Positions 11,261 to 64,000 of a stretch of 64,000 bases of DNA are shown here, in pieces. Source of the stretch: Macrostomum lignano (lineage: Eukaryota); contig NIVC01001677.1 of assembly GCA_002269645.1 (NCBI GenBank), positions 124,001 through 188,000 on the forward strand. Reading direction: 5' to 3'. Every line of letters starts with the position of its first letter. Positions within the stretch are counted from its first letter, which is position 1. Under the pieces are notes generated by a model, which did not search any database, was not told where the DNA came from, and worked only from the letters and a program-made list of their open reading frames with translations. Position numbers and translations under genes: made by a program.

Positions 11261-11531
11261 TACACAGAAAGACAGACAGACAGACACATACACAGACAGA
11301 CAGACACATACAGACAGACAGACAGACAGACAGACAGTCAGACAGACAGACAGACAGACACAGACAGACACATACACAGAGAGACAGACAGACACATACA
11401 CAGAGAGACAGACAGACAGACACAGACAGACACATACACAGAGAGACAGACAGACAGACACATACACAGATAGACAGACAGACAGACAGACAGACATACA
11501 CAGAGAGACAGACAGACAGACAGACATACAC

Positions 11532-11568
<37 letters not shown>

Positions 11569-11571
11569 CAT

Positions 11572-11610
<39 letters not shown>

Positions 11611-13637
11611 CAGACAGACACATACACAGACAGACAGACACACAGACAGACATCCTCAGCCGATCGCTCGCTGCTCCGCAGGCAATACACGTGCCGCAAT
11701 TCAGTCGGCGGCCGAGACTCCCTAGTCGACGAGCGAGGCGTGGTCTGTTCTCGCGCGGATCTCCTGACCGGCGGCTGCTGCCCCTACCCCAGCCAGCGGT
11801 CCGTGAGGTACCACTGCTCCGCTTGTAATCAGTTTAGTCTGTGCTGCAAAAGCTTCGAATTCTGCGTCTCGTGCTGTCTGCAGCCGAATCAGCGACCGAT
11901 CCTAGAGGCGGTGCTGCTCAGAGCGCGAGCACTCGGTGACAAAGTTTTACTGCGGGTGGCCGATCCGTTTCAGTTGTGCCTGGCCCGCTGCCGGACCAGC
12001 TCTGAGAGCGTGCAGCACGAGAACGCTTATAGGTTGGCTTGATTATATACTGCAGAGTACAGTTTCGGCTCTGGGATCTGTGGATCTGGGATCTGAGGAT
12101 ATGAGATCTGAGGATCTGAGGACCTGGGATCTTAGGATCTGAGAATCTGGATCTGAGGATCTGGATCTGAGGATCTGAGGATCTGAGGATCTGGATCTGA
12201 GGATCTGGGATCTGAGGATCTGGATCTGAGGATCTGGGATCTGAGGATCTGGATCTGAGGATCTGGGATCTGAGGATCTGGATCTGAGGATATGAGGATC
12301 TGGGATCTGAATATCTGGGATCTGAAGATCTGGGATCTGAAGATCTGGGATCTGAGGATATGAGGAACTGGGATCTGAATATCTGGGATCTGAGGATCTG
12401 AAGATCTGGGATCTGAGGATATGAGGAACTGGGATCTGAATATCTGGGATCTGAGGATCTGAAGATCTGGGATCTGAAGATCTGGGATCTGGGATCTGAA
12501 GATCTGGGATCTGAAGATCTGGGATCTGAAGATCTGGGATCTGAGGATATGAGGATCTGGGATCTGAATATCTGGGATCTGAGGATCTGAAGATCTGGGA
12601 TCTGGGATCTGAAGATCTGGGATCTGAAGATCTGGGATCTGAATATCTGGGATCTGAAGATCTGGGATCTGAAGATCTGGGATCTGAAGATCTGGGATCT
12701 GAAGATCTGGGATCTGAAGATCTGGGATCTGAAGATCTGGGATCTGAAGATCTGGGATCTGAGGATCTGAGAATCTGGGATCTGAGGATCAGGATCTGAG
12801 AATCTGGGATCTGAGGATCAGGATCTGAGAATCTGGGATCTGAGGATCAGGATCTGGGGATCTGAGGATCAGGATCTGGGATCTGAGAATCTGGGATCTG
12901 AAGATCTGGATATGAGAATCTGGGATCTGAGGATCTGGATATGAGGATCTGGATATGAGGATCTGGATATGAGAATCTGGGATCTGAGGATCTGAGAATC
13001 TGGGATCTGAGGATCTGAGAATCTGGGATCTGAGGATCTGAGAATCTGGGATCTGAGGATCTGAGGATCTAGATTTGAGGATCTGAGGGTCTAAGGATCT
13101 GAATCTGGGATATGAGAATCTGGGATCTGAGGATCTGAGAATCTGGGATCTGAGGATCTGAGAATCTAGATTTGAGGATCTGAGGGTCTAAGGATCTGGA
13201 TCTGAGGATCTGAGTATCTGGGATCTAAAAAATCAAAGAATCTGGGATCTGAAGATCGGAGATCTGATATCTGAGGATTTGGCGTTTTAGAATCCGAAAT
13301 TCAAGGATTTGAGGATTTAGGTTTATAGAGCTCCAATATTTTTAAAGCGAATATTAAATCTAGAATTGAGAATCTATAATTAATCAATAATTTGGGGATC
13401 TGTTTTCTGGGTATGAAAAGCTGTCAGTGGATCAGAGGGTCTGCGATCTGGCGTAGTAATTATCTAGGATCTCAATTCAACAGAAAATGTTGCATATTAA
13501 ATCTCGTGCATTAAAGCTGCTGAGCTGGTGTTAGATAGACAAATTTCAATCGCATCTCTGTTTCAACCCGCAGAGACCCGGTGAACAAGCACTGCTTCGG
13601 TCTGCAGCCGCCAACTCTGAGATTAGCCAATCGTTAA
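7311..13637 (+). CDS. SPRING1: SREBP pathway regulator SPRING1/C12orf49 homologue; join(7311..7421,9683..9855,11682..12032,13574..13637), 232 aa
   Basis: Exon 1 is a type II anchor ([33 protein letters not shown]). Exon 3 has [41 protein letters not shown] and [22 protein letters not shown]; exon 4 is DPVNKHCFG. All junctions are GT-AG with compatible phases (0,2,2), total 699 nt. Confidence 0.9.
7756..8910. mobile_element. Non-autonomous hAT element in SPRING1 intron 1
   Basis: TIRs TAGAGGTCGGAT (7756) and ATCCGACCTCTA (8910); perfect 8-bp TSD ATTGTGAT at 7748-7755 and 8911-8918. Confidence 0.9.
8093..8256. repeat. Long imperfect palindrome (MITE-like) nested in the hAT element
   Basis: GCGCAACC..GGCCATTTCTATTGGCAACACACACATGTAA..GTTGCTATTGG is mirrored by CCAATAGCAACTTACATGTGTGTGTGTTGCCAATAGAAATGGCC..GGTTGCGC. 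Confidence 0.8.
10105..11650. repeat. Complex (GACA)n-derived minisatellite in SPRING1 intron 2
   Basis: GACA runs interleaved with CACATACACAGA(G/A/T)A units; source of many spurious SVCL/RQTD ORFs. Confidence 0.97.
12068..13330. repeat. GGATCT/GAGGATCT/GAAGATCT short-period satellite in SPRING1 intron 3
   Basis: Nested units of about 6-14 bp, e.g. TGGGATCTGAAGATC, decaying towards 13330. Confidence 0.95.
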
Positions 13638-15811: not shown

Positions 15812-16104
15812 AATAATAATAAAAATAACAATTGATTACACCTGCCCTAATTAGGCAGATGTGCAACTGACAGCTCAGCCGTAGCTATTGCTCCGCGCAT
15901 CTGAAGGCTGCGTACGGCTGTTCAGTCCCACACACCCTCAATTACCCCAGCTAATGCTGGCACCCATTTTACAGCTGGGTGAATTAAAGCAATGCAGAGT
16001 TAAGTGTCTTGCTCAAGGACACACATTTTTTCAGTGGGATCGAGAATCGAACCCCCGACCTTCAAGTCGTGAGTCGGCCGCTCTAACCACTAGGCTACAA
16101 CACC
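15812..16104 (-). mobile_element. tRNA-derived SINE
   Basis: The minus strand has an A box TAGCCTAGTGGTTAGAGCG, a B box GGTTCGATTC, a central GTGTCCTTGAGCAAGACACTTAAC..CACCCAGCTGTAAAATGGG domain (V-/Meta-SINE-like) and a TTA-rich tail. Confidence 0.8.
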
Positions 16105-20423: not shown

Positions 20424-20945
<522 letters not shown>

Positions 20946-21786: not shown

Positions 21787-22178
<392 letters not shown>

Positions 22179-40647: not shown

Positions 40648-42862
40648 TCACACCAACTGCAGATGGTCGTAGCTCGCCCCCCGTTTCTCATCAATGAACG
40701 GCAGAGTGAAGCCCTCGCCGTAGGATGAACTGCAACGGAAGGTGCCAATCTCGCCGCCGCGCATTTGCAATTCAATTGAGCGTCGGCGACGCCTAACAAC
40801 GCCGGAGCCGCCGCTGCTAGTAACAGCGCCGCTGTCTAGCACTGAGAACTGATGCTGCTGAGCCTTGTTCCGACGAACTATGCACACTAGGCCGATGATA
40901 ATGGCGACAAACAGCAGGGAGGAAAGCAGGATGACGCTCATTAAAACTAGGTCTTCCCTAGTTAGCTTCATGCCTCCGGCCTGAGCCAGGCCGTCGACTC
41001 CTTCTGTTGGCGCTGTGGCGTTAAAATCGACAGTTGATGAATTACCTGGTTCGATCGCTTCAGGTACTGCCTTGGTGGTGGCTGCAGTAGTTGTAATCTT
41101 TATTGTTGCTGGACCTGCCCTCCCTGAACCGCCGGCTCTTACAGGCTTTGTTGTAGCCTGAACTTCGGCTGTTGTTAGCTTCTCAGTAGCTGTAGTAGAC
41201 TGAGTTGTTGATGCCGGTTTAAGTTTGGTGGTGGTCGCGGCTGGTGATTCTGTTGTACGAGTTTTCACTTCCAACGTTGTTGTTGCTTCAAGAGAAGTTT
41301 TTATAGATGTTGTTGATTGAATCTTCGTTGCAGGCATCTCAGTTGACTTTGATGCCATTTTTGATCCCTCCGTTGTTGTTTTAGCTTCTGTTGTAATCAA
41401 TGCGGCCTTTGTTGTTGTTAGCGTCTCAGTTACTGTTGTTGGTGCCGCAGTTGTTGGTGCTTCAGTTGTTGTAGTTTTTGGTGCCTCAGTTGTTTTTGTT
41501 GTTGTTTCTGTAGGTGCCTCGGTAGTAGTAATTGTTGTAGTTGTTGGTTTTTCAGTTGCTACAGTTGTTGGTGCTTCGGTAGTAGTTGTTGTTTTGGTTT
41601 TTGGTTCCTCAGTTGTCTTTGTAGTGGTTTGTGCCTCAATTGTTGTAATAGTAGTTGTTGGTGCCTCAGTTGTTGTTGTTGTCGTCGTCGTAGTTGTTAG
41701 TGCCTCTGTTGTTGTTGTCGTAGTTGTTGGTGCCTCAGTTGTTGTTGTCGTAGTTGTTGGTGCCTCAGTTGTTGTTGTAGTTGTTGGTGCCTCAGTTGTT
41801 GTTGTCGTAGTTGTTGGTGCCTCAGTTGTTGTTGTCGTAGTTGTTGGTGCCTCAGTTGTTGTTGTAGTTGTTGGTGCCTCAGTTGTTGTTGTAGTTGTTG
41901 GTGCCTCAGTTGTTGTTGTAGTTGTTGGTGCCTCAGTTGTTGTTGTCGTCGTAGTTGTTGGTGCCTCAGTTGTTGTTGGTGTTGTTGTTGTTGGTGTCGT
42001 AGTTGTGGTTGCATCAGTTGTTGTTGTTTTTGTTGTTGGTGCCTCAGTTGTTGTTGGTGTCGTAGTTGTGGTTGCATCAGTTGTTGTTGTTGTGGTTCTA
42101 GGTGCCTCAGTTGTTGTAGTAGCTTCCGTTTTGAGGGGCGGTTCTGCTTTACTATCGGCAACAGTCGTTTTGCTTATAGTCGTTGGTTCCGTCTTTGGTG
42201 TCTCTGTCGTCATCTCGGGAGCAATTTGTTTTGCAACAGTTGTGTTCGAAGCACTGTTAGAAAGCAAATCACTAGGCTTCATTGTTGTTGTCTTAAACTC
42301 GTCGCCAGGAATCGACGAGACTGCAAAGGGAGGCCACATTGAAGTAGAGAAGCAGTTAGCGGACGGAAAAAAGAGGAAAGTAGTTGCTGAAGAGTCGGAT
42401 TATAAAGTTAGCCCGATCATGGGCTTCACCCTCAAGGGATCGATTTGAGCACAGATTATGCGAATGATTTGATCAACTCTTCGGACAGGGGAACGCGCTC
42501 AAGAAGCCAGACAGATACACGCTAGAGTTAAGCTAGATGAGACGAGGGTCAGAGGAGCTAGGGATGTTGGATCGATGTTTAAGTCTAACTAACCATTCCG
42601 TGTTATTTAATCAACTAAATTTTCTGTCGTCTTTTTGTGTCGTGTGTCAGACTCGGCCTTGACACACTTGGATGCTAGTCTAAACTGAGCCACGATTATT
42701 GATAAATAACAATTTTCAAAAAGAAATAAAATATTAGTTACCTGGCGACGAGTCGCTTTCTTCAGGCTCAACAGCTGCACTTTGAACAGTTCCACAAGTG
42801 AGCAGCAGAAGCATCAGACAGGCGATTGTCGCTTGACGCGAAAGAGCGTTCCGGTGCGTCAT
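40648..42862 (-). CDS. Thr-rich mucin-like type I membrane protein; complement(join(40648..42320,42742..42862)), 597 aa
   Basis: Exon 1 is a signal peptide, MTHRNALSRQATIACLMLLLLTCGTVQSA, with a phase-1 CAG|GTAACT donor that matches the TTTGCAG acceptor. Exon 2 has TTTTTEAP repeats, a TM helix (LVLMSVILLSSLLFVAIIIGLVCIV) followed by RR, and a tail ending SYDHLQLV. Confidence 0.88.
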
Positions 42863-45800: not shown

Positions 45801-45944
45801 CATTGGGAGCTTCGCATTGGGACAGGCCAGGCCTCGGTAGAGAAGCTCGCTTGTAAATGTCTGAACGACGAGCGCCAACTGCCGGACTGAACTTTATATT
45901 TTATTACGGCAGTGGCCCAAGGCTCGATAAACCGATCAGATGTC

Positions 45945-46417
<473 letters not shown>

Positions 46418-47860
46418 TTCTACTGTCTGTGTGTTTACGTGGACTTTTTGGAAGTTCAGTAGCCTCGTTAGCTGGACCACCCGGTGTAGGTAGACCACTT
46501 AGGTGGACCACCAAATAATTTTGTCTCTGGTGGGGTTAAGACGTTGATGAGGATCTCAAATTAATGTCAGGCGGGTCAAGAAGGGCTCTAGCAATTTTGG
46601 AATGTCTAGCATGGTTTTTTCCAAAGTTATTCGCATTTCAGTTTAGCTGGACCTCCAGCCTGGTCTACCTAAACCGAGCGAGTCTGGTCCACGTAAACCG
46701 AAAAATTTCAGAAAATTTTTCGAAAATCGTCTGTTTGTGTCTGTTTGTGTCTGTTTGTGTATAGCAGTTATTAAGCATAGATTCGATGCAAAACTGAATT
46801 TTTTTACATATCATTACCTTACGAACAAATGGCTATGTTAACATCATATTATGACCGCCACTGGCCTTAAAACAATATGCGTTAAAATTCTTTGACATTC
46901 AAGTAGGTACGCAGGTTAATTTAAAATTCTGACAACCTCGTATGCGAAATGAATTTTATATAGTAAACTTTAAACTCCATTTAATTAGCTCAGTTCCAGC
47001 AATTCCGGTATCGTACTCTGAGCAGAGACTCACAGAGTAAGACACCAATGTAAAGAAATCCAATTTACTAACCAGATCAAGCGATAAAGACTCCGAGACA
47101 AGAAAGATATTTAAGTGAAGCTTAAACAATATTCTTCAATGACTTCTCAAGAACTCCCAGTGGTCCTTGATAGCCACACTGTGTAAATGAAAATTTCTGA
47201 GGCTCTACCATTACACAAGAAAAAATTAATAGCAACTTCATAAATTAAGTGCTTGCCAACTCTATCGCAAACACTATGGGATATCTTGAAGAAGAAGATC
47301 CTAAGCTGCAGCCTTTTAAGTGCAAAGTTGAAGATGCAATTTACCTAATTGAAAAGGGCCATTCATACATGTACATGCAAAATCAAGAGGACGCAATTAA
47401 GAAGGGCCTTTTAGCTAGAAATTGGGTCTCTGAATCTCTAGCAAAAGATCGACTTGATTGCGGTCCCAGTAAAACTAAGAACGCATTAACAGTCAGCCTA
47501 ACACTCACTGTCTGTTTGGTCCACGTAAACACATTTGCAGGATTATAGGGTTGGAACAGACAGACAGACAGACCTCCCTTTCTATAATTGGCTGGTTAAC
47601 ACTTAGGAGGAAAGATCAACCCCAACGATGGGACCGACCTCAGCCAATAGGAAACCCGCAAGGGTTCTGAAGGTAAGACTGTAGAGAGAGGGATATATAA
47701 TGTCTAAGCGGGTGGTCCCCGTAAACCATGGCGTAGTTAGACCACACACAGACAGTTTTATAAATTAGAACTGATTCTATTCACACTTATTAGGTCTAAC
47801 ATTATTTTCCATACTCTAAGTTTCATCTATAGATAAATTTATTGTGCCAAGCAAGATATA

Positions 47861-50800
47861 ATGACCCGAAAAAAAAACAAAAAGGACGCCAAGCCTAAGC
47901 CTAAGGTAAAACCTAAAAAAACTGCGACGCAAAAAGCCACTGCAAAATCGAAGAAGGCCGCATCGCCTGGTGAAAACCGACAGTCTGCTCGCAAAACCAT
48001 CGACACCGAGTCCAGAAAAGTGAGTTTCGTTTGATGATCTCAAAATAGCTAATTGCAAGGCCTATCTAACCTACAGACACAACTGAAGCAGCTCTCTCAG
48101 TCTGTTTGGGGCTTTGGCTCACAGAGCTGTCTTGAAAGTTTAGTGCAGGAATGCTTACGTTTCTTGGAATGCAATCAGAACAGATTCTTAGAAAGCGAGC
48201 TGGTCCACCATGAGATCAGAATGTCTGCACTGTGTAAATGAATGGTCTCTAGGCATTCCGACTCAGATTATCGCCTAGTAGTGCTGTAGAGAAGGTGGTC
48301 CACCTAACCTACAGACACAACTGAAGCAGCTCTCTCAGTCTGAGGGTCACACGGATACACTGCAGCGGTTTTGAATTTAAGCTTCCGACTTTGACTTGTC
48401 TTTTTATTCTCTAACTTCCTAGGAGCCTGAGGTCGAATTTCGTTCTCCTGAGCTCGACCAGTCTGACGCTTCGAAAAAGTTGAAATCGCGCTCTACGTCT
48501 GCATCACGCCTTGATGAAGGCGCTCAGTCGCACAACGCTACCGCGGATGCAGGCGCTACTCCAGCCTCGAAGAAGGCCGCATCGCCTGGTGAAAATCGTC
48601 GGTCTACTGGCAAATCCGTCGACACCGAGTCCAGAAAAGTGAGTTTCGCTTGATGATCTCAAAGTAGCTAGCTGCAACTCAATTGCTGTAGAGAAGCTGG
48701 TCCACCTAACCTACAGACACAACTGAAGCAGCTCTCTCAGTCTGTTTGGGGCTTTGAATCTTGGAAGGTGGTCCACCTAACCTACAGACACAACTGAAGC
48801 AGCTCTCTCAGTCTGTTTGGGGCTTTGACTTTTATAAGGTGGTCCACCTAACCTACAGACACAACTGATGCAGCTCTCTCAGTCTGTTTGGGGCCTTGGC
48901 TGTCAGAGCTGTCTTGAAAGTTTAGTGCGGGAATGTTTCCGTTTCTTGGAATGCAATCAGAACAGATTCTTAGAAAGCGAGCTGGTCCACCATGAGATCA
49001 GAATGTCTGCACTGTGTAAATGAATGGTCTCTAGGCATTCCGACTCAGATTATCGCCTAGTAGTGCTGTAGAGAAGGTGGTCCACCTAACCTACAAACAC
49101 AACTGGAGCAGCTCTCTCAGTCTGTTTGAGGGTCACACGTAGGGATGTCGACCCCGGGGAGTGCTCCCCGGGGCCCCGGGGAGCTTGTCGGGGAATATTC
49201 CCCGGGGAATTGAACCGGGGACCCCGGGGAGAAAAATGCATTTTTAACCTAATTTTTGCCATTAAAATAAGAAAATAATTCACAGAGAGCTGATTGAAAC
49301 TCTGTCTATGCTTTTCTTACCGCATAACTGCTTATCTCAATGTAAAATTTCAAACGCAACACACGTTTGAATGTTTTTTCACTACGAGTCCTTCAATCAA
49401 GCAAATTTCACCTAAAAACCCGTCAGGAAAAAGAAGCTTTACTGACTACTGTGTTGGTCTGCGTTGACGGCTTGACGGAATTTGACGCAGGCACAGCGCT
49501 GCGTCCTGCGGACGCATGGGGGTGTCATACAATAACAAAATGCTCCCTATTAGACAAGGACAATGTCTGCTAGAAATAAAAATTTTGATTATAAAAACAG
49601 TCTCATTCATTAATTATCCTCCCACGAGCGTAGCTGCTGAGCATGCATTTTCCGCCTCCACACCACAGTCTGGACTCCTTCTGACAAAGGTGCACGCACG
49701 ATTTGATGATGCCACGTTGTCAAATACAGTTTTAAATAAACACAAGCTCCCCGGGGTCGACATCCCTACTACAACCAAGGGATATAGGCATTTCTTAGGA
49801 GCCATTTAAATTTTAAAGTGATCTTATGCGAATTTTAATGTTAAAAGCTTCATGCTGTAACTAACTAATTTAGTAGGATTGCATTGTAATCAGTTATTCA
49901 TTAATTTTTCGCTATTTTTACAAACCATCCCACGTTGTCTTGACTCTTGATTTGCCATCTACTGTTATAACTGAGCCTGAAGACTTGTCTATACAGAGGA
50001 CAGTGTTTTGAATCTCTGGCTAAACTGTCTCTCCTCTCTGCGCCTCTCCACTCGCGGGTACAGAGAAGGCTATTAAAAAGTTATTCCAAAACACTGTACA
50101 TTCGCTATGTACATTAAGCCCAATCGCCTGACCCTTCGTCTGGGGGTCTGGGCTGGTGGAATGAGTGAGCGGCACAAACAACAGAAAAAGCAGACAAACT
50201 TCACATGCTTACAGTTTCTGTCCTGATTGAGATACAGAGTTGAGACTTTACATTTAGATAGAGAATGAGTCAATAAAGAATTGCGTCAAATTTGAAGTCA
50301 ATCGCTTCACGTGGAGCAAGCTTATGACAGCCGAAAGTTAGTCATTTTAAACCTATTTACACTCCTTTGCCCAGATCGGGAAAGAGAGGCAGGCGGGCGG
50401 AGGTTGGGGTGGTTGCCTCGCTGAAAAAACAGTTAATTTTAAAGTGCACAGCGCCTTTCAGGATTAACTTTGAGACTTGAAATTTTACACGGTTGAAAGG
50501 ATCGGTAGAAGTGGAGCGGCGCTATGGAGGATTTAGTAAAAAATCGCGCATTTTGAGCAGTTTTTGCACTTTTAGGTAGGAAGACTTGAGTTTAGGAAAT
50601 TTTAAGGTAGCCTAAGACATTCTCCGTAGTAAATTTAGGGCGGGTGCAAAAGTTATCGTAATTTGGTTGAGCGGTTTGGGACTTGGGAGTCCATAGCAAA
50701 GTAATTTGTACACAGACACACACGCAGACAGAGTTTTCATTTTTATAGGTAGAGATTGTTTAGTTTTTACCCTTGCGCCTTGAACATGTAGTCTAAAGCT

Positions 50801-53800
50801 AAAATCAAAGTTTAAAATGCCATTTAAGATCTAAGCCAAAGTTATTCGCCGTTTTTAACTTATTTTTAATTTTCCCCGGGGTCCCCGGGAATGACAGTAA
50901 ATTCCCCGGGTCCCCGATAAGAATATTCCCCGGGGAATCGACATCCCTAGTCACACGGATACACGGCAGCGGTTTTGAATTTAAGCTTCCGACGTTGACT
51001 TGTCTTTTTATTCTCTAACATCCTAGGAGCCTGAGTTCGAATTTCATTCTCCTGAGCTCGACCAGTCTGACGCTTCGAAAAAGTCGAAATCGCGCTCTGC
51101 GTCTGCATCACGCCTTGATGAAGGCTCTCAGTTGCACAACGCTACCGCGGATGCAGGCGCTACTCCAGCCTCGAAGAAGGCCGCATCGCCTGGTGAAAAT
51201 CGTCGGTCTACTCGCAAATACGTCGACACCGAGTCCAGAAAAGTGAGTTTCGCTTGATGATCTCAAAGTAGCTAGCTGCAACTCAATTGCTGTAGAGAAG
51301 CTCTTAAAAGGTGGTCCACCTAACCTACAGACACAACTGAAGCAGCTCTCTCAGTCTGTTTGGGGCTTTGACTCTTATAAGGTGGTCCACCTAACCTACA
51401 GACACAACTGAAGCAGCTTTCTCAGTCTGTTTGGGGCTTTGACTCTTGGAAGGTGGTCCACCTAACCTACAGACACAACTGAAGCAGCTCTCTCAGTCTG
51501 TTTGGGGCTTTGACTTTTATAAGGTGGTCCACCTAACCTACAGACACAACTGATGCAGCTCTCTCAGTCTGTTTGGGGCCTTGGCTGTCAGAGCTGTCTT
51601 GAAAGTTTAGTGCGGGAATGTTTCCGTTTCTTGGAATGCAATCAGAACAGATTCTTAGAAAGCGAGCTGGTCCACCATGAGATCAGAATGTCTGCACTGT
51701 GTAAATGAATGGTCTCTAGGCATTCCGACTCAGATTATCGCCTAGTAGTGCTGTAGAGAAGGTGGTCCACCTAACCTACAGACACAACTGAAGCAGCTCT
51801 CTCAGTCTGTTTGAGGGTCACACGGATACACTGCAGCGGTTTTGAATTTAAGCTTCCGACGTTGACTTGTCTTTTTATTCTCTAACTTCCTAGGAGCCCG
51901 AGGTCGAATTTCGTTCTCCTGAGCTCGACCAGTCTGAGGCTTCGAAAAAGTTGAAATCGCGCTCTGCGTCTGCATCACGCCTTGATGAAGGCGCTCAGTC
52001 GCACAACGCTACCGCGGATGCAAGCGCTACTCCAGCCTCGAAGAAGGCCGCATCGCCTGGTGAAAATCGTCGGTCTACTGGCAAATCCGTCGACACCGAG
52101 TCCAGAAAAGTGAGTTTCGCTTGATGATCTCAAAGTAGCTAGCTGCAACTCAATTGCTGTAGAGAAGCTGGTCCACCTAACCTACAGACACAACTGAAGC
52201 AGCTCTCTCAGTCTGTTTGGGGCTTTGAATCTTGGAAGGTGGTCCACCTAACCTACAGACACATCTGAAGCAGCTTTCTCAGTCTGTTTGGGGCTTTGAC
52301 TCTTGGAAGGTGGTCCACCTAACCTACAGACACAACTGAAGCAGCTCTCTCAGTCTGTTTGGGGCTTTGACTTTTATAAGGTGGTCCACCTAACCTACAG
52401 ACACAACTGAAGCAGCTCTCTCAGTCTGTTTGGGGCTTTGACTCTTAAAAAGTGGTCCACCTAACCTACAGACACAACTGAAGCAGCTCTCTCAGTCTGT
52501 TTGGGGCTTTGACTCTTGGAAGGTGGTCCACCTAACCTACAGACACAACTGAAGCAGCTCTCTCAGTCTGTTTGGGGCTTTGACTCTTAGAAGGTGGTCC
52601 ACCTAACCTACAGTCAAAACTTATGTACTGTTTAGGCGTTTCCGTAATGGAGTAATATGTGAGAAATTTTTTTTTATTTTAGTTTCTACAGGGCTGTTTG
52701 GTCGAGCAGTTTACATTGGATTCTCTTCGAGGGAAGCGAGTTTTTTTTCTGTACGGCGAAAGTCAAAAGCGACAAAAGAAGCTGGAATCTGCCGTCGTCT
52801 ATTATGGCGGAAGCGTTGCTTCGTTTTTTTCAAATGAGGTGTGTAGTTTTTGCAATGCATTCGTTGTTTTTGTTTGTTGCTTGTTAATAGGGCAGATTAG
52901 AGACGTTGATAGATTTTTTGTAGCTATGGGCTCGTATTTTTTGCTTTTCCAGGTTGATTTAATCATCGCTGACGATTCCGCTGTCTCCATTGAAGCTAAA
53001 CAATCTTTTTCGGAGTTTTCTAGGGGTTTCACCATGCAGCAGAGAGCCGTTACGCAAACTTCGAGTTCGCAATGCAGAATTGTCAAAACATTCGAAGATA
53101 TTTTGACGAAAGCTCGCTTGCTGCAAATACCTGTCTACACTCCGGCAATATTTCGAGATCGAATTCGCGATCAAGTTTCTCAACACGAGCTGTGCCAGAA
53201 AACTATTTCTTCAGGGAGGTTTGCCGAAGAAGATCGGAATTTGACCCCACCGGCCGTTGTTGTTACGGATGCCCAGCATTTGCTGAGACCAATCTTCAAA
53301 GATAACATTGATGTCGTCGACATTTTTGCAAACCCAAGGGCTAATAATAACGATGAAAAAAATCGTCAAAAGCCTGACGGCAAAGAAAAACGGAAAGGTC
53401 GGTGTGAAAACTGTCGCGAAGCCTACGACGACTTTAATCAGCACATAACATTAAGCCAAAAGCACCAAGATTTCGTTTCGAATAAAAAAAATTTTTACTG
53501 AAATCGACCAAATCATTTCAACTCTTCCGACGCTAGACAGCGCCCTAAATGAAGCGACTCAAAAGGCTACCGCTCCTATGACACATCATGACACGAAAAA
53601 ACCGGATTCGAAAGCACTACCTAACATATTTCAGCAAAATGACGGTGATAGACGCCAAGCCGCATCGCTTGGCGAAAATCGTCAGTCTGCTCGCAAATAC
53701 GTCGACACCGAGTCCAAAAAAGTGAGTTTCGTTTAATGATCTCAAAATAGCTAGCTGCATGCAACTCAATTGCTGTAGAGAAGTTCTTAAAAGGTGGTCC

Positions 53801-56800
53801 ACCTAACCTACAGACACAACTGAAGCAGCTCTCTCAGTCTGTTTGGGGCTTTGACTTTTATAAGGTGGTCCACCTAACCTACAGACACAACTGAAGCAGC
53901 TCTCTCAGTCTGTTTGGGGCTTTGACTCTTAAAAGGTGGTCCACCTAACCTACAGGCACAACTAAAGCAGCTCTCTCAGTCTGTTTGAGGGTCACACGGA
54001 TACACGGCAGCGGTTTTGAATTTAAGCTTCCGACTTTGACTTGTCTTTTTATTCTCTAATTTCCTAGGAGCCTGAGGTCGAATTTCGTTCCCGCCAAATC
54101 GAACGCACTGGTGCCTCAAAAAGAGGGCGGAAATCGCGAAGCCGTTCGCGCTCTGCATCACGCCTTGATGAAGGCGCTCAGTCGCACAACGCTACCGCGG
54201 ATGCAGGCGCTACTCCAGCCTCGAAGAAGGCCGCATCGCCTGGTGAAAATCGTCGGTCTACTGGCAAATCCGTCGACACCGAGTCCAGAAAAGTGAGTTT
54301 CGCTTGATGATCTCAAAGTAGCTAGCTGCAACTCAATTGCTGTAGAGAAGCTGGTCCACCTAACCTACAGACACAACTGAAGCAGCTCTCTCAGTCTGTT
54401 TGGGGCTTTGACTCTTGGAAGGTGGTCCACCTAACCTACAGACACAACTGAAGCAGCTCTCTCAGTCTGTTTGGGGCTTTAACTCTTAAAAGGTGGTCAA
54501 CCTAACCTACAGACACAACTGAAGCAGCTCTCTCAGTCTGTTTGGGGCTTTGACTTTTATAAGGTGGTCCACCTAACCTACAGACACAACTGAAGCAGCT
54601 CTCTCAGTCTGTTTGGGGCTTTGACTTTTATAAGGTGGTCCACCTAACCTACAGACACAACTGAAGCAGCTCTCTCAGTCTGTTTGGGGCTTTGACTTTT
54701 ATAAGGTGTCCACCTAACCTACAGACACAACTGAAGCAGCTCTCTCAGTCTGTTTGGGGCTTTGACTCTTGGAAGGTGGTCCACCTAACCTACAGACACA
54801 ACTGAAGCAGCTCTCTCAGTCTGTTTGGGGCCTTGGCTGTCAGAGCTGTCTTGAAAGTTTAGTGCGGGAATGTTTCCGTTTCTTGGAATGCAATCAGAAC
54901 AGATTCTTAGAAAGCGAGCTGGTCCACCATGAGATCAGAATGTCTGCACTGTGTAAATGAATGGTCTCTAGGCATTCCGACTCAGATTATCGCCTAGTAG
55001 TGCTGTAGAGAAGGTGGTCCACCTAACCTACAGACACAACTGAAGCAGCTCTCTCAGTCTGTTTGAGGGTCACACGGATACACGGCAGCGGTTTTGAATT
55101 TAAGCTTCCGACTTTGACTTGTCTTTTTATTCTCTAACTTCCTAGGAGCCTGAGGTCGAATTTCGTTCCCGCCAAATCGAACGCACTGGTGCCTCAAAAA
55201 GAGGGCGGAAATCGCGAAGCCGTTCGCGCTCTGCATCACGCCTTGATGAAGGCGCTCAGTCGCACAACGCTACCGCGGATGCAGGCGCTACTCCAGCCTC
55301 GAAGAAGGCCGCATCGCCTGGTGAAAATCGTCGGTCAACTGTCAAATCCGTCGACACCGAGTCCAGAAAAGTGAGTTTCGCTTGATGATCTCAAAGTAGC
55401 TAGCTGCAACTCAATTGCTGTAGAGAAGCTGGTCCACCTAACCTACAGACATCAACTGAAGCAGCTCTCTCAGTCTGTTTGGGGCTTTGACTTTTATAAG
55501 GTGGTCCACCTAACCTACAGAAACAACTGAAGCAGCTCTCTCAGTCTGTTTGGGGCTTTGACTTTTATAAGGTGGTCCACCTAACCTACAGACACAACTG
55601 AAGCAGCTTTCTCAGTCTGTTTGGGGCTTTGACTTTTATAAGGTGGTCCACCTAACCTACAGACACAACTGAAGCAGCTCTCTCAGTCTGTTTGGGGCTT
55701 TGACTTTTATAAGGTGGTCCACCTAACCTACAGACACAACTGAAGCAGCTCTCTCAGTCTGTTTGAGGGTCACACGGATACACGGCAGCGGTTTTGAATT
55801 TAAGCTTCCGACTTTGACTTGTCTTTTTATTCTCTAACTTCCTAGGAGCCTGAGGTCGAATTTCGTTCCCGCCAAATCGAACGCACTGGTGCCTCAAAAA
55901 GAGGGCGGAAATCGCGAAGCCGTTCGCGCTCTGCATCACGCCTTGATGAAGGCGCTCAGTCGCACAACGCTACCGCGGATGCAGGCGCTACTCCAGCCTC
56001 GAAGAAGGCCGCATCGCCTGGTGAAAATCGTCGGTCTACTGGCAAATCCGTGGACACCGAGTCCAGAAAAGTGAGTTTCGCTTGATGATCTCAAAGTAGC
56101 TAGCTGCAACTCAATTGCTGTAGAGAAGCTGGTCCACCTAACCTACAGACACAACTGAAGCAGCTCTCTCAGTCTGTTTGGGGCTTTGACTTTTATAAGG
56201 TGGTCCACCTAACCTACAGACACAACTGAAGCAGCTCTCTCAGTCTGTTTGGGGCTTTGACTTTTATAAGGTGGTCCACCTAACCTACAGACACAACTGA
56301 AGCAGCTCTCTCAGTCTGTTTGGGGCTTTGGCTCTCAGAGCTGTCTTGAAAGTTTAGTGCGGGAATGTTTCCGTTTCTTGGAATGCAATCAGAACAGATT
56401 CTTAGAAAGCGAGCTGGTCCACCATGAGATCAGAACGTCTGCACTGTGTAAATGAATGGTCTCAAGGCATTCCGACTCAGATTATCGCCTAGTAGTGCTG
56501 TAGAGAAGGTGGTCCACCTAACCTACAGACACAACTGAAGCAGCTCTCTCAGTCTGTTTGGGGCTTTGACTCTTAAAAGGTGGTCCACCTAACCTACAGA
56601 CATCAACTGAAGCAGCTCTCTCAGTCTGTTTGGGGCTTTGACTCTTAAAAGGTGGTCAACCTAACCTACAGACACAACTGAAGCAGCTCTCTCAGTCTGT
56701 TTGGGGCTTTGACTTTTATAAGGTGGTCCACCTAACCTACAGACACAACTGAAGCAGCTCTCTCAGTCTGTTTGGGGCTTTGACTTTTATAAGGTGGTCC

Positions 56801-59800
56801 ACCTAACCTACAGACACAACTGAAGCAGCTCTCTCAGTCTGTTTGAGGGTCACACGGATACACGGCAGCGGTTTTGAATTTAAGCTTCCGACTTTGACTT
56901 GTCTTTTTATTCTCTAACTTCCTAGGAGCCTGAGGTCGAATTTCGTTCCCGCCAAATCGAACGCACTGGTGCCTCAAAAAGAGGGCGGAAATCGCGAAGC
57001 CGTTCGCGCTCTGCATCACGCCTTGATGAAGGCGCTCAGTCGCACAACGCTACGCGGATGCAGGCGCTACTCCAGCCTCGAAGAAGGCCGCATCGCCTGG
57101 TGAAAATCGTCGGTCTACTGGCAAATCCGTGGACACCGAGTCCAGAAAAGTGAGTTTCGCTTGATGATCTCAAAGTAGCTAGCTGCAACTCAATTGCTGT
57201 AGAGAAGCTGGTCCACCTAACCTACAGACACAACTGAAGCAGCTCTCTCAGTCTGTTTGGGGCTTTGACTTTTATAAGGTGGTCCACCTAACCTACAGAC
57301 ACAACTGAAGCAGCTCTCTCAGTCTGTTTGGGGCTTTGACTTTTATAAGGTGGTCCACCTAACCTACAGACACAACTGAAGCAGCTCTCTCAGTCTGTTT
57401 GGGGCTTTGGCTCTCAGAGCTGTCTTGAAAGTTTAGTGCGGGAATGTTTCCGTTTCTTGGAATGCAATCAGAACAGATTCTTAGAAAGCGAGCTGGTCCA
57501 CCATGAGATCAGAACGTCTGCACTGTGTAAATGAATGGTCTCAAGGCATTCCGACTCAGATTATCGCCTAGTAGTGCTGTAGAGAAGGTGGTCCACCTAA
57601 CCTACAGACACAACTGAAGCAGCTCTCTCAGTCTGTTTGGGGCTTTGACTCTTAAAAGGTGGTCCACCTAACCTACAGACATCAACTGAAGCAGCTCTCT
57701 CAGTCTGTTTGGGGCTTTGACTCTTAAAAGGTGGTCAACCTAACCTACAGACACAACTGAAGCAGCTCTCTCAGTCTGTTTGGGGCTTTGACTTTTATAA
57801 GGTGGTCCACCTAACCTACAGACACAACTGAAGCAGCTCTCTCAGTCTGTTTGGGGCTTTGACTTTTATAAGGTGGTCCACCTAACCTACAGACACAACT
57901 GAAGCAGCTCTCTCAGTCTGTTTGAGGGTCACACGGATACACGGCAGCGGTTTTGAATTTAAGCTTCCGACTTTGACTTGTCTTTTTATTCTCTAACTTC
58001 CTAGGAGCCTGAGGTCGAATTTCGTTCCCGCCAAATCGAACGCACTGGTGCCTCAAAAAGAGGGCGGAAATCGCGAAGCCGTTCGCGCTCTGCATCACGC
58101 CTTGATGAAGGCGCTCAGTCGCACAACGCTACCGCGGATGCAGGCGCTACTCCAGCCTCGAAGAAGGCCGCATCGCCTGGTGAAAATCGTCGGTCTACTG
58201 GCAAATCCGTCGACACCGAGTCCAGAAAAGTGAGTTTCGCTTGATGATCTCAAAGTAGCTAGCTGCAACTCAATTGCTGTAGAGAAGCTGGTCCACCTAA
58301 CCTACAGACACAACTGAAGCAGCTCTCTCAGTCTGTTTGGGGCTTTGACTCTTAAAAGGTGGTCCACCTAACCTACAGACACAACTGAAGCAGCTCTCTC
58401 AGTCTGTTTGGGGCTTTAACTCTTAAAAGGTGGTCAACCTAACCTACAGACACAACTGAAGCAGCTCTCTCAGTCTGTTTGGGGCTTTGACTTTTATAAG
58501 GTGGTCCACCTAACCTACAGACACAACTGAAGCAGCTCTCTCAGTCTGTTTGGGGCTTTGACTCTTGGAAGGTGGTCCACCTAACCTACAGACACAACTA
58601 AAGCAGCTCTCTCAGTCTGTTTGGGGCTTTGGCTCTCAGAGCTGTCTTGAAAGTTTAGTGCGGGAATGTTTCCGTTTCTTGGAATGCAATCAGAACAGAT
58701 TTTTAGAAAGCGAGCTGGTCCACCATGAGATCAGAACGTCTGCACTGTGTAAATGAATGGTCTCAAGGCATTCCGACTCAGATTATCGCCTAGTAGTGCT
58801 GTAGAGAAGGTGGTCCACCTAACCTACAGACACAACTGAAGCAGCTCTCTCAGTCTGTTTGGGGCTTTGACTCTTGGAAGGTGGTCCACCTAACCTACAG
58901 ACACAACTGAAGCAGCTCTCTCAGTCTGTTTGGGGCTTTGGCTCTCAGAGCTGTCTTGAAAGTTTAGTGCGGGAATGTTTCCGTTTCTTGGAATGCAATC
59001 AGAACAGATTCTTAGAAAGCGAGCTGGTCCACCATGAGATCAGAACGTCTGCACTGTCTAAATGAAGGGTGTCTAAACGTTTTGACTTAGATTATCGCGT
59101 TGTAGTGCTTCAGAGAATTGACTTATTGACTTTTCAGGAAAAATGAGCTAATGAGTATATCTAAGCTATGTAACTTGCTGTTTATTTTTCAGGTTTGCGA
59201 TAGAGACGGCGATGCTACCAAAGCAAGGATAGACGTTGCTTTCGATTTAGTAGATGATGATTCGTTTGTGGACAAAAATCTTACGGTAGTAGACGATATT
59301 CTTGGTGGAAGGTTGCACTCAGCTTTAAGGGACATTGCAAATACGAGTATACTACCTGAGGACGCTGAACTCGAGGAAGAAGATGGTGATGAAGATTATT
59401 ATTTGGAGGAAGTCTGGTCTGATGATTTAGTTCCGTCCCAAGCGAAACTTAAGCATGAGAAGAAGAGGCATTGCTGCCTCTTTTGCGGAGAAATGTTTTC
59501 GAAGATCAGAAGGCATCCTATTCGGGCACACTCGAAGGAAATGTGTGTACAGCGCGCCCTCGCATTTAATCCTAAGTCTGATAGTAAGTTTTTGAAATAA
59601 GTTTTTTATGTAGGTCCTCATAGTAGTATTTAGTTTGTCTGAAAATAATTATCTGTTCATATTTTTTTCAGAATATGACCAGGAATTTGATCGCTTGCGC
59701 TTTCGAGGAGATTACGAACATAACATAAAAGTTATGACCCAGGAGAAGGAGGGAGGAATCATTGTGTGTCGCGAAAGAAGTTCTTCGGACATGAAAGATA

Positions 59801-62136
59801 ATGAAGTTTCGTATTTGCCGTGCATTCACTGTTTTGGATTTTTTCGTAAAACTGAGTTAAGCAGGCATGTTCAGCGCTGCCGCTTTGTCGTAAATGTCAG
59901 CGATTTGAACAGGCGCACAGAAGCTGTCAGTGCAGGACGCTGCCTTCTCCTTGCATCATGCTTTCCGGCGAAATATCCGTCCAAATTTATTGAACTTATT
60001 AATAAAATGAAGGTAGACTCATGTAGCAAAGTAGCTCAATCAGACAAGCTTATAATGGAACTTGGCTACTACGCCTATGAAGGTTTTACATCCGGAAAGA
60101 CAGGAAAGAAAATTGTAACTGCGAAAATGCGTGAAATGTCGAGATTACTTATGTCAGCTCGTGAAATTATGGGCGATCCCAGCGCTTGTCTTGACGATTT
60201 GCTGAAGCCATCATCATTTGATTTAGTTGTTGAGGCGACTCGAAATGTAGCGAAATTTACGGCCCAAGAAGATGCTCAGATTTGCGATTCTTTTTCTATT
60301 CCTTCGATGGCACTTAAGTGCGGGTTTTCTCTGAAGCTGGCTGCTGAACTGTCGTTAGTACGTGCCGTGAAATGCGAAATGCCCGAAGTAGCTCAGGAGC
60401 GACGCAACTTCATCACTCTGTATGAAACATCATGGAGCCGTAAAATATCTTCGATTGCACTTTTGTCCTTGAAAGAAAGAAAAATTGACAAGGGTCAGAC
60501 ATTGCCGTTAACTAGCGACATTCAGTTAATCACGAAGCACATTAACGAATATTTAAGCCACATCGACACGGAAAAGCTAAAAAGCAGCCCTTCTTACTGG
60601 AAAGAGGTGGCCGAATATGTTGCGATTCGTTTGTCTATTTTCAACAAGCGCCGGGCGTCTGAGCCCTTCAAGCTGCGAGTTTCGGCGTGGCAGAAAGCAA
60701 GATCATGCAAAGATGTTGATGATACAACATTATCTGCGCTAAGTGAATTAGAAAAGCAAATGCTTTACCGGTTGACTATCGTTAATGTTCGAGGTAAGAG
60801 AGCACAGCGACCGGTTCCTCTGCTAGTTTCGAATGAGATTGCTGAAATTATCGATGAGCTCATTCGCACAAGACACCACGCTTCAAGTCCTTACGTATTC
60901 TGCAGTAGTGGAAGTTTGGGATATATATCCCCATTCGTTGCGCGCACAAATGTTGTCTCCAGTTGTCAAGGGCTCCAGTTCCCTGCTCGTCTATCTTCGA
61001 CCAACCTTCGAAAATACATTGCCACTGTCTCTCAGATCCTTGAAATGAGAGAAAATGAGCTCGGATGGCTCTCCAACCATCTTGGACATAGCCTTAATGT
61101 TCACCATAATTTCTATCGATTGCATGAAAACACTATTGAGCTTGCTAAAGTAGGCAAGCTACTTCTGGCTATCGAGGCCGGTAGATTCGACCAGCTTAAA
61201 GGCAAAACTATCGAAGAGATTGATGTTAACGACATCGAAATTGACTATGACATTGACGATAAGTCAGATGCAAAAAAAGATGATTTGAACGAATCCGGTG
61301 ATGTGGAAGCCTCAATAGGCTCACAGGCTCGAGAATTAAAACGTGGTGACCAAAAGAGTCAAGCACCTCCTGAGAATAATGGAGCTCGTATCCAAGCTAA
61401 GGAATTTGAGGACGAGTCAATTTATCACGAAGGTTCTGTCGACTTTCGCGGAGCCCCCCTGTCCATCAAGCAAGTCGAAAAAAAGAAGAATCGATTAGCT
61501 GTGCTCGACTCAGATGAATATGAAAGCGAAGTAGACAAAGACGATTCAGACTACCAACCGACGAAAAAAACCAGAAAAGTGCAGAAAGCTAGAGCAAACG
61601 AAAGGCGGATTCGAAGGACGACTAAGCCAAAGGGTGCGACAGCAACAACGACTAATAACAAAAGCGAGCCAGGACATGGACAAGAGGACCCACAGAAGGA
61701 CAAAAGCGAGCCAGGACCCGGACAAGAGGACCCACAGAAGGACAAAAGCGAGCCAGGACCCGGACAAGAGGACCCACAGAAGGACAAAAGCGAGCCAGGA
61801 CCCGGACAAGAGGACCCACAGAAGGACAAAAGCGCTCCTAGTTCGGAAGGTAAGGACAAAATGGGAACTGGGGGGAAGAAAAAAACCAAAGTTGATTTCA
61901 GTTACTTCAATCCATTTCAGAAGTCAAGAAAAAAACTAATTCAGGAGCACATTGCGTGGAACAAAGACGAAAATGAGGCAATTAACCGCGCGATAGAAAA
62001 GATCGAAGACGGCAAAGTACCTGGTTTTGCAGCCCTTGGAGAGCTAAAAGCACGCGAACCTGCACTCCAGTCACGATCGATCCATAAAATAAAAACGAAG
62101 TTTTTCAATGAAATGAAAAAACGCGGCATTTTGTGA
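47861..62136 (+). CDS. Predicted 13-exon H1-like/repeat/DBF4-like/tyrosine recombinase fusion gene, ~1900 aa, with two 1-nt frameshifts as assembled
   Basis: Exons 47861-48019, 48423-48638, 51027-51242, 51894-52109, 52683-52838, 52953-53721, 54068-54292, 55146-55370, 55846-56070, 56926-57149, 58005-58229, 59193-59583, 59672-62136. All have AG/GT boundaries; all junctions are phase 0 except the last (phase 1, compatible). There is +1 nt at ~53482-53496 and -1 nt at ~57052. Confidence 0.65.
49140..50949 (+). mobile_element. Non-autonomous hAT element (1810 bp) inserted in an intron of the YR gene
   Basis: TIRs TAGGGATGTCGA and TCGACATCCCTA; perfect TSD GTCACACG (49132-49139, 50950-50957), which is single in sister repeat units; CCCCGGGG subterminal repeats; hAT dimerization remnant YPPTSVAAEHAFSAS..GLLLTKVHARFDDATLS near 49610-49720. 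Confidence 0.93.
50260..50756 (-). mobile_element. Possible non-autonomous Helitron-like 5' fragment inside the hAT cargo
   Basis: The minus strand begins A|TCTCTACCTATAAAAATGAAAACTCTGTCTGCGTGTGTGTCTG, a TC start followed by a GTCT-like tract as in many invertebrate Helitron-like elements. No CTAG 3' end was found. Confidence 0.3.
52683..53721 (+). CDS. DBF4: DBF4-like exons (motif N/BRCT, motif M, zf-DBF motif C)
   Basis: After removing the in-frame intron 52839-52952: LRGKRVFF..KLESAVVYYGGSVASFFSNE|VDLIIAD..ILTKARLLQIPVY (N); LTPPAVVVTDAQHLLRPIFKD (M); KGRCENCREAYDDFNQHITLSQKHQDFVSN, continuing (+1 frame) as EIDQII (C). Confidence 0.85.
59193..62136 (+). CDS. Tyrosine recombinase exons with Cys/His N-terminal motifs, acidic linker, 14-aa repeat and Myb/SANT-like tail
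   Basis: CLFCGEMFSKIRRH and YLPCIHCFGFF..LSRHVQRC precede catalytic-type motifs FNKRRASE (R), VRGKR (K), STNLRKYIAT (R) and LGHSLNVHHNFYR (H,Y). KSEPGPGQEDPQKD occurs about 4 times (42 bp). C-terminus is WNKDENEAI..GKVPG..EPALQSRSIHKIK. Confidence 0.88.
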
Positions 62137-62229
62137 CTAAACGCTTTATGATTGCTAACACTAAGATTAAAAAGCATCTATTAGTTTAGCTGACAAGAAA
62201 TACCTGTTCACTATCGATAGCATAGCGAT

Positions 62230-62320
62230 GGCTTTTGGGGGCGGTCCAAGTTTGGGACGCCAAAATGAGTATGAGGGGCGCCAATTTTTAAGCTGGGGGT
62301 GCAAAAAACGTGTAGGGGGG
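62230..62320 (-). mobile_element. Fragment of the same MITE family as 27741-28048, inverted
   Basis: GGGGGCGGTCCAAGTTTGGG..GAGTATGAGGGGCGCCAATTTTTAAGCTGGGGG is the reverse complement of ~27950-28020, with substitutions. Confidence 0.75.
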
Positions 62321-62329
62321 GGAATGCGA

Positions 62330-63190
62330 GTCGCCGTTTTAAAAATGCTTCAATTTCTTGTATCTGTTTGATACAATTTCCATTTTAATAACTGTCGCCG
62401 TTTTAAAAATGCTTCAATTTCTTGTATCTGTTTGATACAATTTCCATTTTAATAACTGTCGCCGTTTTAAAAATGCTTCAATTTCTTGTATCTGTTTGAT
62501 ACAATTTCCATTTTAATAACTGTCGCCGTTTTAAAAATGCTTCAATTTCTTGTATCTGTTTGATACAATTTCCATTTTAATAACTGTCGCCGTTTTAAAA
62601 ATGCTTCAATTTCTTGTATCTGTTTGATACAATTTCCATTTTAATAACTGTCGCCGTTTTAAAAATGCTTCAATTTCTTGTATCTGTTTGATACAATTTC
62701 CATTTTAATAACTGTCGCCGTTTTAAAAATGCTTCAATTTCTTGTATCTGTTTGATACAATTTCCATTTTAATAACTGTCGCCGTTTTAAAAATGCTTCA
62801 ATTTCTTGTATCTGTTTGATACAATTTCCATTTTAATAACTGTCGCCGTTTTAAAAATGCTTCAATTTCTTGTATCTGTTTGATACAATTTCCATTTTAA
62901 TAACTGTCGCCGTTTTAAAAATGCTTCAATTTCTTGTATCTGTTTGATACAATTTCCATTTTAATAACTGTCGCCGTTTTAAAAATGCTTCAATTTCTTG
63001 TATCTGTTTGATACAATTTCCATTTTAATAACTGTCGCCGTTTTAAAAATGCTTCAATTTCTTGTATCTGTTTGATACAATTTCCATTTTAATAACTGTC
63101 GCCGTTTTAAAAATGCTTCAATTTCTTGTATCTGTTTGATACAATTTCCATTTTAATAACTGTTGCCCTTTTAAAAATGCTTCAACTTCT
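62330..63190. repeat. 64-bp AT-rich tandem array, about 13 near-identical copies
   Basis: Unit GTCGCCGTTTTAAAAATGCTTCAATTTCTTGTATCTGTTTGATACAATTTCCATTTTAATAACT; one or two diverged copies at ~63350-63440. Confidence 0.97.
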
Positions 63191-63873
63191 TGTACTCCCT
63201 ATGACTTTTTTAACTAATGCAATCCTAAGTTTGTTAAACGTGTAGTTTAAGAATGTACTTCCGGACTTAAATTAGTTTCAATGACTTTGCAGTTAGTTTA
63301 ATTAGGTTTAAATCTTTTGCGTTAAGGCAAGCGAAATGATGCGGTATTTATTTTCAAAATGCTTCAATTTCTTATATCTGTTTGATACAATTTCCATTTT
63401 AATAACTGTTGCCGTTTTAAAAATGCTTCAACTTCTTGTATCCCTGAGTGTGCGTTGTTTTTCTTTCGTAACTAATGCAGTTTAACCCATAGTTTAGTAA
63501 AGCTAAATAAATTCGTTTGAACCAGGGTTTTTTTAATAAAATGGAATCGTAAACCTTTTTTATCTTCTGTTTCTTGAGAATTTCTGTTTTAATTAGCCCA
63601 AAATAACAGTTTGAAACTCATAAATTTTCTACAAAGAAAGAGGTCTAACTAAACCAACTGTTTTTTTGCGGTCCACCTAACCCGGTCCCCAAAACGTAGT
63701 TAGTGAACCGCCACAGTTTCCACGAACTGGCTATTCCGTCAAGTTAACAAAAAGATAACCCTAGCTAGCCTTTCGCGTTGTCAAAACAGACTCTATTTTT
63801 TAACCGGAATTGCGTGGTCCACGTAACGCATTAACATAACTCAGGTCCCGCTAAACACACAGACAGTCGTAAG

Positions 63874-63875
63874 AG

Positions 63876-63932
<57 letters not shown>

Positions 63933-63933
63933 T

Positions 63934-64000
<67 letters not shown>
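63874..64000. repeat. (GTCT)n microsatellite, right flank of the YR element
   Basis: AGTG then a GTCT run to the window end, same orientation as the left flank. Confidence 0.98.

Follow-up and report, generated by a model that had tools for sequence, protein, structure and literature searches.

A mobile element of the flatworm Macrostomum lignano, encoding a predicted tyrosine recombinase, integrates into (GTCT)n microsatellites

The window analysed here is a 64,000-nucleotide (nt) stretch of the genome of the flatworm Macrostomum lignano (contig NIVC01001677.1, positions 124,001 to 188,000 of the forward strand), within which a 17.46-kb element (46419–63873 of the window) lies between two co-oriented arrays of the microsatellite (GTCT)n. 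The element contains the gene for a predicted tyrosine recombinase (YR), a second gene whose product resembles DBF4 and long tandem arrays, all enclosed by inverted ends. It is real and probably recently active mobile DNA, and it integrates site- and orientation-specifically, in a fixed register, into (GTCT)n. An original prediction, made from the letters of the window, had proposed a YR-encoding element inserted site-specifically into the microsatellite, and five independent insertions belonging to two families now bear out the proposed targeting.

The terminal inverted repeats (TIRs) of the element are complementary at 20 of 23 positions, and the perfect 16-mer ACTGTCTGTGTGTTTA occurs twice in the 64 kb, on both occasions at an end of the element, against an expectation of 0.04 occurrences. 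The motif GGTCCACSTAA has 56 matches in the window, every one of them within 46499–63826 and none elsewhere, and the boundaries therefore enclose one coherent unit. The host array can be followed as a (TGTC)n tandem run from 45941 to 46412 on the left and from 63876 to the end of the window on the right, both on the same strand. At the two junctions of the window copy the prediction had reported AGTG, which is indeed present and in fact extends to AGTGT (46414–46418 and 63874–63878), with a shared TGT that falls at 46416–46418 on the left. Of the two AG dinucleotides, the left one belongs to the array, in which it is part of a TAGT variant unit, and the right one to the element. Joining the flanks without the element gives GTCTTAGTGTCTGTC, a seamless variant of the array that is also found unoccupied in the left array and, on the minus strand, in an element-free array at 20758/20774. 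The termini contain CTGTCTGT. The inverted ends, the co-oriented arrays, the seamless joined flanks and the likeness of the ends to the target, all of which had been claimed beforehand, are thereby upheld.

The comparison was extended to four further loci, all from M. lignano contigs, with flanks compared over 10 kb. Family 1 consists of the window copy and L001 (NIVC01000029.1), a second copy of 16.30 kb that is 98.9–100% identical, whilst L002, L007 and L008 form family 2, a sister family with 50% amino acid identity. The left flank of L001 is made up of about 400 bp of (GTCT)n closing with ...GTCTGTCTGT/TCTACTG, where the slash marks the junction, and its right junction reads ...CGTAAGAGTGTCTGTCTGTCTGcc and is followed by unique DNA; the right array amounts to 3.5 units. 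Since the left junction of L001 shares only TGT with the right one, the common crossover core is TGT and not AGTG, and to this extent the earlier junction motif has to be shortened. Family 2 has TIRs of 24 nt (TAGTGTATGTGTGTTTGCGTAGAC / GTCTATGTAACCACACATACACTA), and its copies occupy 8870–17647 of L002 (8.8 kb), 1770–17655 of L008 (15.9 kb) and 8873–47284 of L007 (38.4 kb). Their junctions are alike, (GTCT)nGTGT/TAGTG...CACTA/GTATGTCTG(TCTG)n, and the copies are 99.1–99.9% identical. The near-identity of the copies within each of the two families suggests recent activity.

All five insertions lie in (GTCT)n, and the recombinase gene is every time on the strand on which the array reads as GTCT. 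TGT is found at both junctions in 5/5 cases, and after deletion of the element together with one TGT the (GTCT)n array is again in phase. In some 100 kb of flanking DNA beyond the host arrays, (GTCT)n/(AGAC)n makes up only about 1.5%, and because of this low background five insertions out of five in a single orientation are far above chance. The position of the element within the array varies between loci, with array lengths per side that range from 3.5 units (L001 right) through about 9 (L002 left) to more than 100. The five loci have unique flanks that are unrelated, their sole similarity being a dispersed repeat of about 260 bp; none of these loci has the deviating boundaries or non-microsatellite flanks that the original prediction had named as evidence against itself. 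The dispersed repeat is 82–92% identical between its occurrences, which are at 15820–16101 in the window, at 20458–20625 in L001 and at about 426–686 and 51390–51670 in L007.

The anatomy of a putative core site can be read from these junctions. If the ends of family 2 were joined in a circle, the junction would be CACACATACACTA-GTATGTGT-TAGTGTATGTGTG, in which two 13-nt inverted arms surround an 8-nt spacer in the manner of loxP or FRT. This spacer matches the target spacer GTCTGTCT at 6/8 positions, with mismatches at positions 3 and 7. The left junction of the inserted element (attL) holds GTCTGTGT and the right junction (attR) holds GTATGTCT, from which exchange would therefore have taken place within the TGT between the two mismatches. 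For family 1 the corresponding junction would read ...CACACAGACAGTC-GTAAGAGTGTTC-TACTGTCTGTGTG, in which TGT and the left arm are likewise 2 nt apart. The circle junctions as a whole are predicted to contain ...CAGACAGTCGTAAGAGTGTTCTACTGTCTG... in family 1 and ...CACATACACTAGTATGTGTTAGTGTATGTG... in family 2. The four ends of both families align well, with a 24-nt TIR that is followed, about 47 nt from the tip, by the motif CGTTAG(C/G)(T/G)GGACC. Apart from this conserved end architecture, the bodies of the two families have no nucleotide similarity.

The recombinase gene has two exons, a structure that was obtained by tblastn with the protein P0001, and encodes 965 amino acids. In the numbering of the 833-amino-acid open reading frame (ORF) at 59635–62136, the candidate catalytic residues are R339/R340, K388, R459, H482 and Y494, of which R340 and the other four are invariant or nearly so across the homologues and are spaced as in YRs, with 23 residues from R459 to H482 and 12 from H482 to Y494. 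An AlphaFold model of ORF residues 285–535, with a predicted local distance difference test (pLDDT) score of 84 and a predicted template modelling (pTM) score of 0.80, was compared with the PDB by Foldseek. The top 17 matches are all YRs, at probabilities of 0.75–1.0 and TM-scores of about 0.5, and include XerA, XerH, an S. aureus integrase, Cre, IntI4, lambda Int and XerD. With the full-length model the first structural match is archaeal XerA. By its modelled fold and its conserved catalytic residues the protein is a tyrosine recombinase, as had been anticipated. Searches at the level of sequence found no YR match when the family profile was run against PDB sequences, and no YR, DUF3504 or DUF3435 match in Pfam for 21 family members. 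Alignment of the family profile by hhalign with Cre, for which an approximate sequence was used, covered only the NPYxF/NNYLF segment at negligible probability. The Pfam family Phage_integrase (PF00589, cut-off 27.1 bits) is matched by the homologues P0067 (29.4 bits) and P0238 (30.2 bits) and not by the window protein.

Relatives of the recombinase are widespread. The 833-amino-acid ORF matches proteins of 96–99% identity within M. lignano, as well as a paralogue there, P0003, at 50%, and more distant matches of 25–35% identity come from bivalves, beetles, a leafhopper and many metagenome contigs. A profile search returned 8049 clusters at 50% identity, 1883 of them at E <= 1e-30, and the named family members are from molluscs, fishes, octocorals, insects and an isopod. 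There are no relatives of the recombinase in IMG/VR, and the idea of a provirus was rejected. No ends or targets could be resolved on the metagenome contigs L003–L005, where the sequences diverge inside an unrelated dispersed repeat, and no clear TIRs were found in the mussel locus L006 or the beetle locus L009. At the octocoral locus L010 (Dendronephthya gigantea) a (TA)n tract lies at 11375–11490 between inverted ATACACAGTA / TATTGTGTAT arms. This tract with its ACACAGTA-type inverted arms was considered as an end of the element and rejected, as it lies in an intron of the homologous recombinase gene; it may represent a site resembling a junction, or else a related element that is nested there.

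The interior of the window copy consists to about 54% (some 9.5 of 17.5 kb) of tandem arrays of its own subterminal motif, with motif-bearing 71-nt units in higher-order repeats of about 1079 nt and, in addition, a 64-nt array (Table 1). By self-comparison the single-copy parts are 46418–47947, 49140–50949, 52626–53658, 59118–62329 (minus 61658–61834) and 63446–63873. The DBF4-like gene is the only gene besides the recombinase gene; it is present in both family-1 copies and absent from family 2, and a protein search detected no homologue outside M. lignano. Among the ORFs of at least 60 amino acids in the single-copy parts, no Pfam domain of the reverse transcriptase, RNase H, methyltransferase or DDE type was found. 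The segment between perfect 23-nt inverted repeats at 49139–49769, which has no obvious target duplication, is possibly a nested miniature inverted-repeat transposable element. A short (ACAG)4.5 run at 47556–47573, inside the element, is oriented opposite to the host array.

Table 1. Features of the element and of its host array, in positions of the window
Feature	Position	Strand	Remarks
Left half of host (GTCT)n array	45941..46418	+	closes with variant unit ...GTCTTAGTGT
TCT, element bases between shared TGT and left inverted end	46419..46421	+	same in L001
Left TIR, ACTGTCTGTGTGTTTACGTGGAC	46422..46444	+	microsatellite-like core plus GTCCACGTAAA motif
Left subterminal motifs	46466..46509		CGTTAGCTGGACC at 46466–46478, CTTAGGTGGACC at 46497–46509
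Tandem array block 1	47948..49139	+	71-nt units with GGTGGTCCACCTAACC
Segment between perfect 23-nt inverted repeats (GTAGGGATGTCGACCCCGGGGAG)	49139..49769		encloses 585 nt; in both family-1 copies
Tandem array block 2	50950..52625	+	71-nt units
DBF4-like gene (BRCT-like domain and DBF-type zinc finger)	52698..53501	+	114-nt in-frame intron at about 52842–52955; spliced model P0035
Tandem array block 3	53659..59117	+	71-nt units in higher-order repeats of about 1079 nt
Recombinase exon 1	59151..59582	+	acidic N-terminus, first C2H2-like zinc knuckle
Recombinase exon 2	59674..62136	+	second zinc knuckle, core-binding region, YR catalytic domain, disordered linker, C-terminal Myb/SANT-like helical domain
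42-nt in-frame tandem repeat in disordered linker of recombinase	61658..61834	+	177 nt
64-nt tandem array downstream of recombinase gene	62330..63194	+	13.5 copies, 99% identity
Right subterminal motifs	63670..63826	+	GGTCCACCTAA at 63670–63680, GGTCCACGTAA at 63816–63826
Right TIR, GTCCCGCTAAACACACAGACAGT	63845..63867	-	
CGTAAGAG, element bases from right inverted end to shared TGT	63868..63875	+	same in L001
Right half of host (GTCT)n array	63876..64000	+	first bases are the shared TGT; continues past the window

The copies differ in size by repetition of sequence that they already hold. Each copy is covered in full by the other copies of its family; in family 2, the 8.8-kb copy alone accounts for the entire sequence of the copies of 38.4 and 15.9 kb. 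The size differences in this family come from the copy number of an internal module, in which motif arrays of 83–85 nt are accompanied by a duplicate of the 5' portion of the recombinase gene; as a consequence of this duplication, three ORFs start with the same MQMGSDVTIPQAEG... sequence. Because the copies cover each other, the spread from 8.8 to 38.4 kb reflects the number of internal modules and not cargo. The proposal that the element carries cargo is therefore abandoned, as its bulk is its own subterminal motif in amplified form and the larger family-2 copies hold nothing beyond the smallest one.

Elsewhere in the window, (AGAC)n arrays in the opposite orientation and without an element lie at 10099–11652 and 20424–20929. 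In the array at 10 kb the variant unit GTGTATGT, similar to the family-2 TIR TAGTGTATGTGTG, is present more than 40 times, and the TAGT variant (GTCTTAGTGTCT) occurs six times in the left array of the window copy, six times in L001, once in L008 and twice in the empty array at 20 kb. The TAGT and GTGTATGT variants could be excision footprints or simply common variants of the array; no exact derivation of them as footprints of either family was found. The host genes of the window include one for a class C G-protein-coupled receptor (2601–5348; ANF_receptor, NCD3G and 7tm_3 domains), which is split over two ORFs, and a single-exon gene on the minus strand (40648–42339), 4 kb from the insertion, for a threonine-rich mucin-like protein with a C-terminal transmembrane segment. 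The region 12070–42122 is unusually rich in satellites, with a perfect (GATA)98 at 21787–22178 and minisatellites of 8/15, 15, 20, 21, 23, 30, 31, 33 and 36 nt at many sites.

The element is best explained as an autonomous DNA transposon whose YR is the sole transposition enzyme and which integrates conservatively into (GTCT)n by way of a circle junction, a reading to which a probability of roughly 0.8 is given. The element would excise as a circle, in which the joined ends would form an attP-like core site made of inverted 13-nt target-like arms, with the GTCCAC(C/G)TAA motif outward of them and a short TGT-containing spacer between them. The recombinase would then pair this core site with the (GTCT)n array, and conservative strand exchange would occur in TGT, 2 nt from the left arm, so that the insertion would be fixed in orientation and register and no target sequence would truly be duplicated. 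The motif GGTCCACCTAAC and the 13-nt arms are candidate binding sites for the zinc-knuckle, core-binding and Myb-like domains of the protein. Most likely, the subterminal motif copies inside the element are accessory sites to which the zinc-finger or Myb-like domains bind and which have multiplied by tandem amplification; this would account for the size of the element and for its variation among copies. The circular intermediate, the exact positions of cleavage and the role of the motif arrays are the parts of this scheme that we infer.

Several observations weigh against this explanation. In textbook YR sites the arms are 6–8 nt apart, unlike the equivalent 13-nt arms of family 1, which are separated by 12 nt. 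Moreover, the identity of the spacer with the canonical target is restricted to TGT, so that the enzyme would have to tolerate heterology. Within the catalytic domain the histidine of the HxxR motif is replaced by Thr456, leaving five of the six catalytic residues, and the window protein has no match to any Pfam or PDB sequence profile. Finally, the analysis encountered neither a circular junction nor an empty allele nor an excision event. To these may be added the presence of TIRs of 23–24 nt, of repeated subterminal motifs and of a 3-nt direct repeat at every junction, which are typical of DDE elements and form the case for the main rival explanation. According to this, a cut-and-paste DDE transposase acting in trans moves the element, TGT is a 3-bp target duplication and the recombinase is a passenger or has a resolution function. 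It is disfavoured, and its likelihood is judged to be low. The element contains no DDE-like ORF, and a recombinase gene, homologous ends and the same target have been kept together in two families that lack nucleotide similarity. DDE duplications abut the TIRs, whereas in family 1 unequal gaps of 3 nt (left) and 8 nt (right) lie between TGT and the TIRs, and the strict orientation within an asymmetric repeat is better suited to site-specific recombination.

The nature of the arrays and the independence of the copies have also to be considered. The flanking (GTCT)n could have grown out of the microsatellite-like termini after insertion, for which the CTGTCTGT of the termini is a possible slippage seed, and would then not represent a target. 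Yet the ends are inverted and the arrays co-oriented, so the right array cannot stem from the right end; moreover, the array on either side may be as short as 3.5 units or exceed 100, its phase is exactly restored once the element is deleted, and element-free arrays exist in the window at 10.1–11.65 kb and 20.4–20.9 kb. Outgrowth is accordingly regarded as very improbable. Hardly any weight, too, is given to the suggestion that one ancient insertion gave rise to all the copies by segmental or polyploid duplication or through artefacts of assembly, even though the M. lignano genome is highly duplicated and the copies are about 99% identical or more, as the flanks of the five loci have nothing but the dispersed repeat in common and the element sits at a different position in the array at each locus.

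The concept of a microsatellite-specific YR transposon is already known: some families of CryptonV are summarised as inserting specifically into microsatellites (Kojima, PMC8869645, citing a report on cnidarian elements by Kapitonov & Jurka 2012, Repbase Reports 12:2034). CryptonV is the closest described kind, likened here through that description of microsatellite targeting and not through sequence. Both are YR DNA transposons of animals, with a microsatellite target in some CryptonV families and in 5/5 insertions here, and protein relatives of the M. lignano element are found in cnidarians (octocorals) and fishes; the flatworm host and the (GTCT)n target set the present element apart. The original description of the element as Crypton-like holds for the mechanism and fails on structure. 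As in Cryptons (Goodwin 2003), the YR is the only transposition protein, reverse transcriptase is absent, a short sequence (here TGT) is shared by terminus and target, and a circular intermediate with conservative integration is proposed. The proteins of the classical Crypton groups match DUF3504 or DUF3435. CryptonA, I, F and S have no TIRs, and animal Cryptons match DUF3504 and lack a C-terminal domain (Kojima & Jurka 2011, PMC3212892). CryptonF carries GCR1_C, and the active CryptonF-1_cRei of Chlamydomonas shares CACCG/CAYCG between terminus and target (PMC9977147). In contrast, the M. lignano elements have TIRs of 23 nt (family 1) or 24 nt (family 2), N-terminal zinc knuckles and a C-terminal Myb-like domain, and neither the window protein nor the 21 family members match DUF3504 or DUF3435.

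Other YR systems share part of this design. Endogenous nimaviruses have YRs with a C2H2 zinc-binding N-terminal region and insert into the telomere repeat (TAACC)n (PMC10871703), and are thus, by description only, a further case of a zinc-binding YR in animal genomes that enters a short tandem repeat; their genomes, however, exceed 200 kb, and the M. lignano element has no viral genes. Cre/loxP and Flp/FRT share the catalytic fold and the arrangement of the putative family-2 junction, with 13-nt inverted arms and an asymmetric 8-nt spacer, but the natural repeat that serves as target here is degenerate and resembles the arms in one half-site only, and the spacers mismatch at 2/8 positions in family 2 and at more in family 1. 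The Starships of fungi are giant YR elements of tens of kb with short TIRs and a target-site preference (PMC10104507), all of which applies to the M. lignano element as well. Unlike Starships, which bear gene cargo and a DUF3435 captain, it contains self-derived tandem repeat and has no DUF3435 match. DIRS, Ngaro and PAT elements, retrotransposons that combine a YR with reverse transcriptase and RNase H, differ in that the M. lignano interior consists of tandem repeats and two genes, with no reverse transcriptase domain.

A broader and more speculative proposal, which is considered doubtful, is that these elements represent an undescribed, metazoan-wide superfamily of TIR-bearing YR transposons distinct from CryptonV, with at least 8000 clusters, zinc-knuckle and Myb-like domains and loxP-like 13-8-13 sites, in which the DBF4-like protein of family 1 couples the circle to the licensing of host replication. 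If true, such coupling could explain how elements that move by a 'conservative' route gain copies.

Eukaryotic YR DNA transposons are poorly characterised, and the target-specific ones are known from little more than a database report. What is added here is a flatworm host, two families with one target and the base-level logic of the junctions of five insertions, together with a putative loxP-like core site, runaway internal amplification and a DBF4-like accessory gene. The five insertions provide attL and attR junctions, from which attP and attB can be deduced, and an intact recombinase gene. M. lignano can be cultured in the laboratory and made transgenic, and circle formation, tolerance of spacer heterology and the control of orientation are therefore directly testable in the host itself. 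The inflation of the element from 9 to 38 kb by amplification of what is putatively its own binding-site module represents a route from transposon to satellite DNA. Moreover, an animal recombinase that is aimed at an abundant and harmless repeat would be of practical interest as an integration tool.

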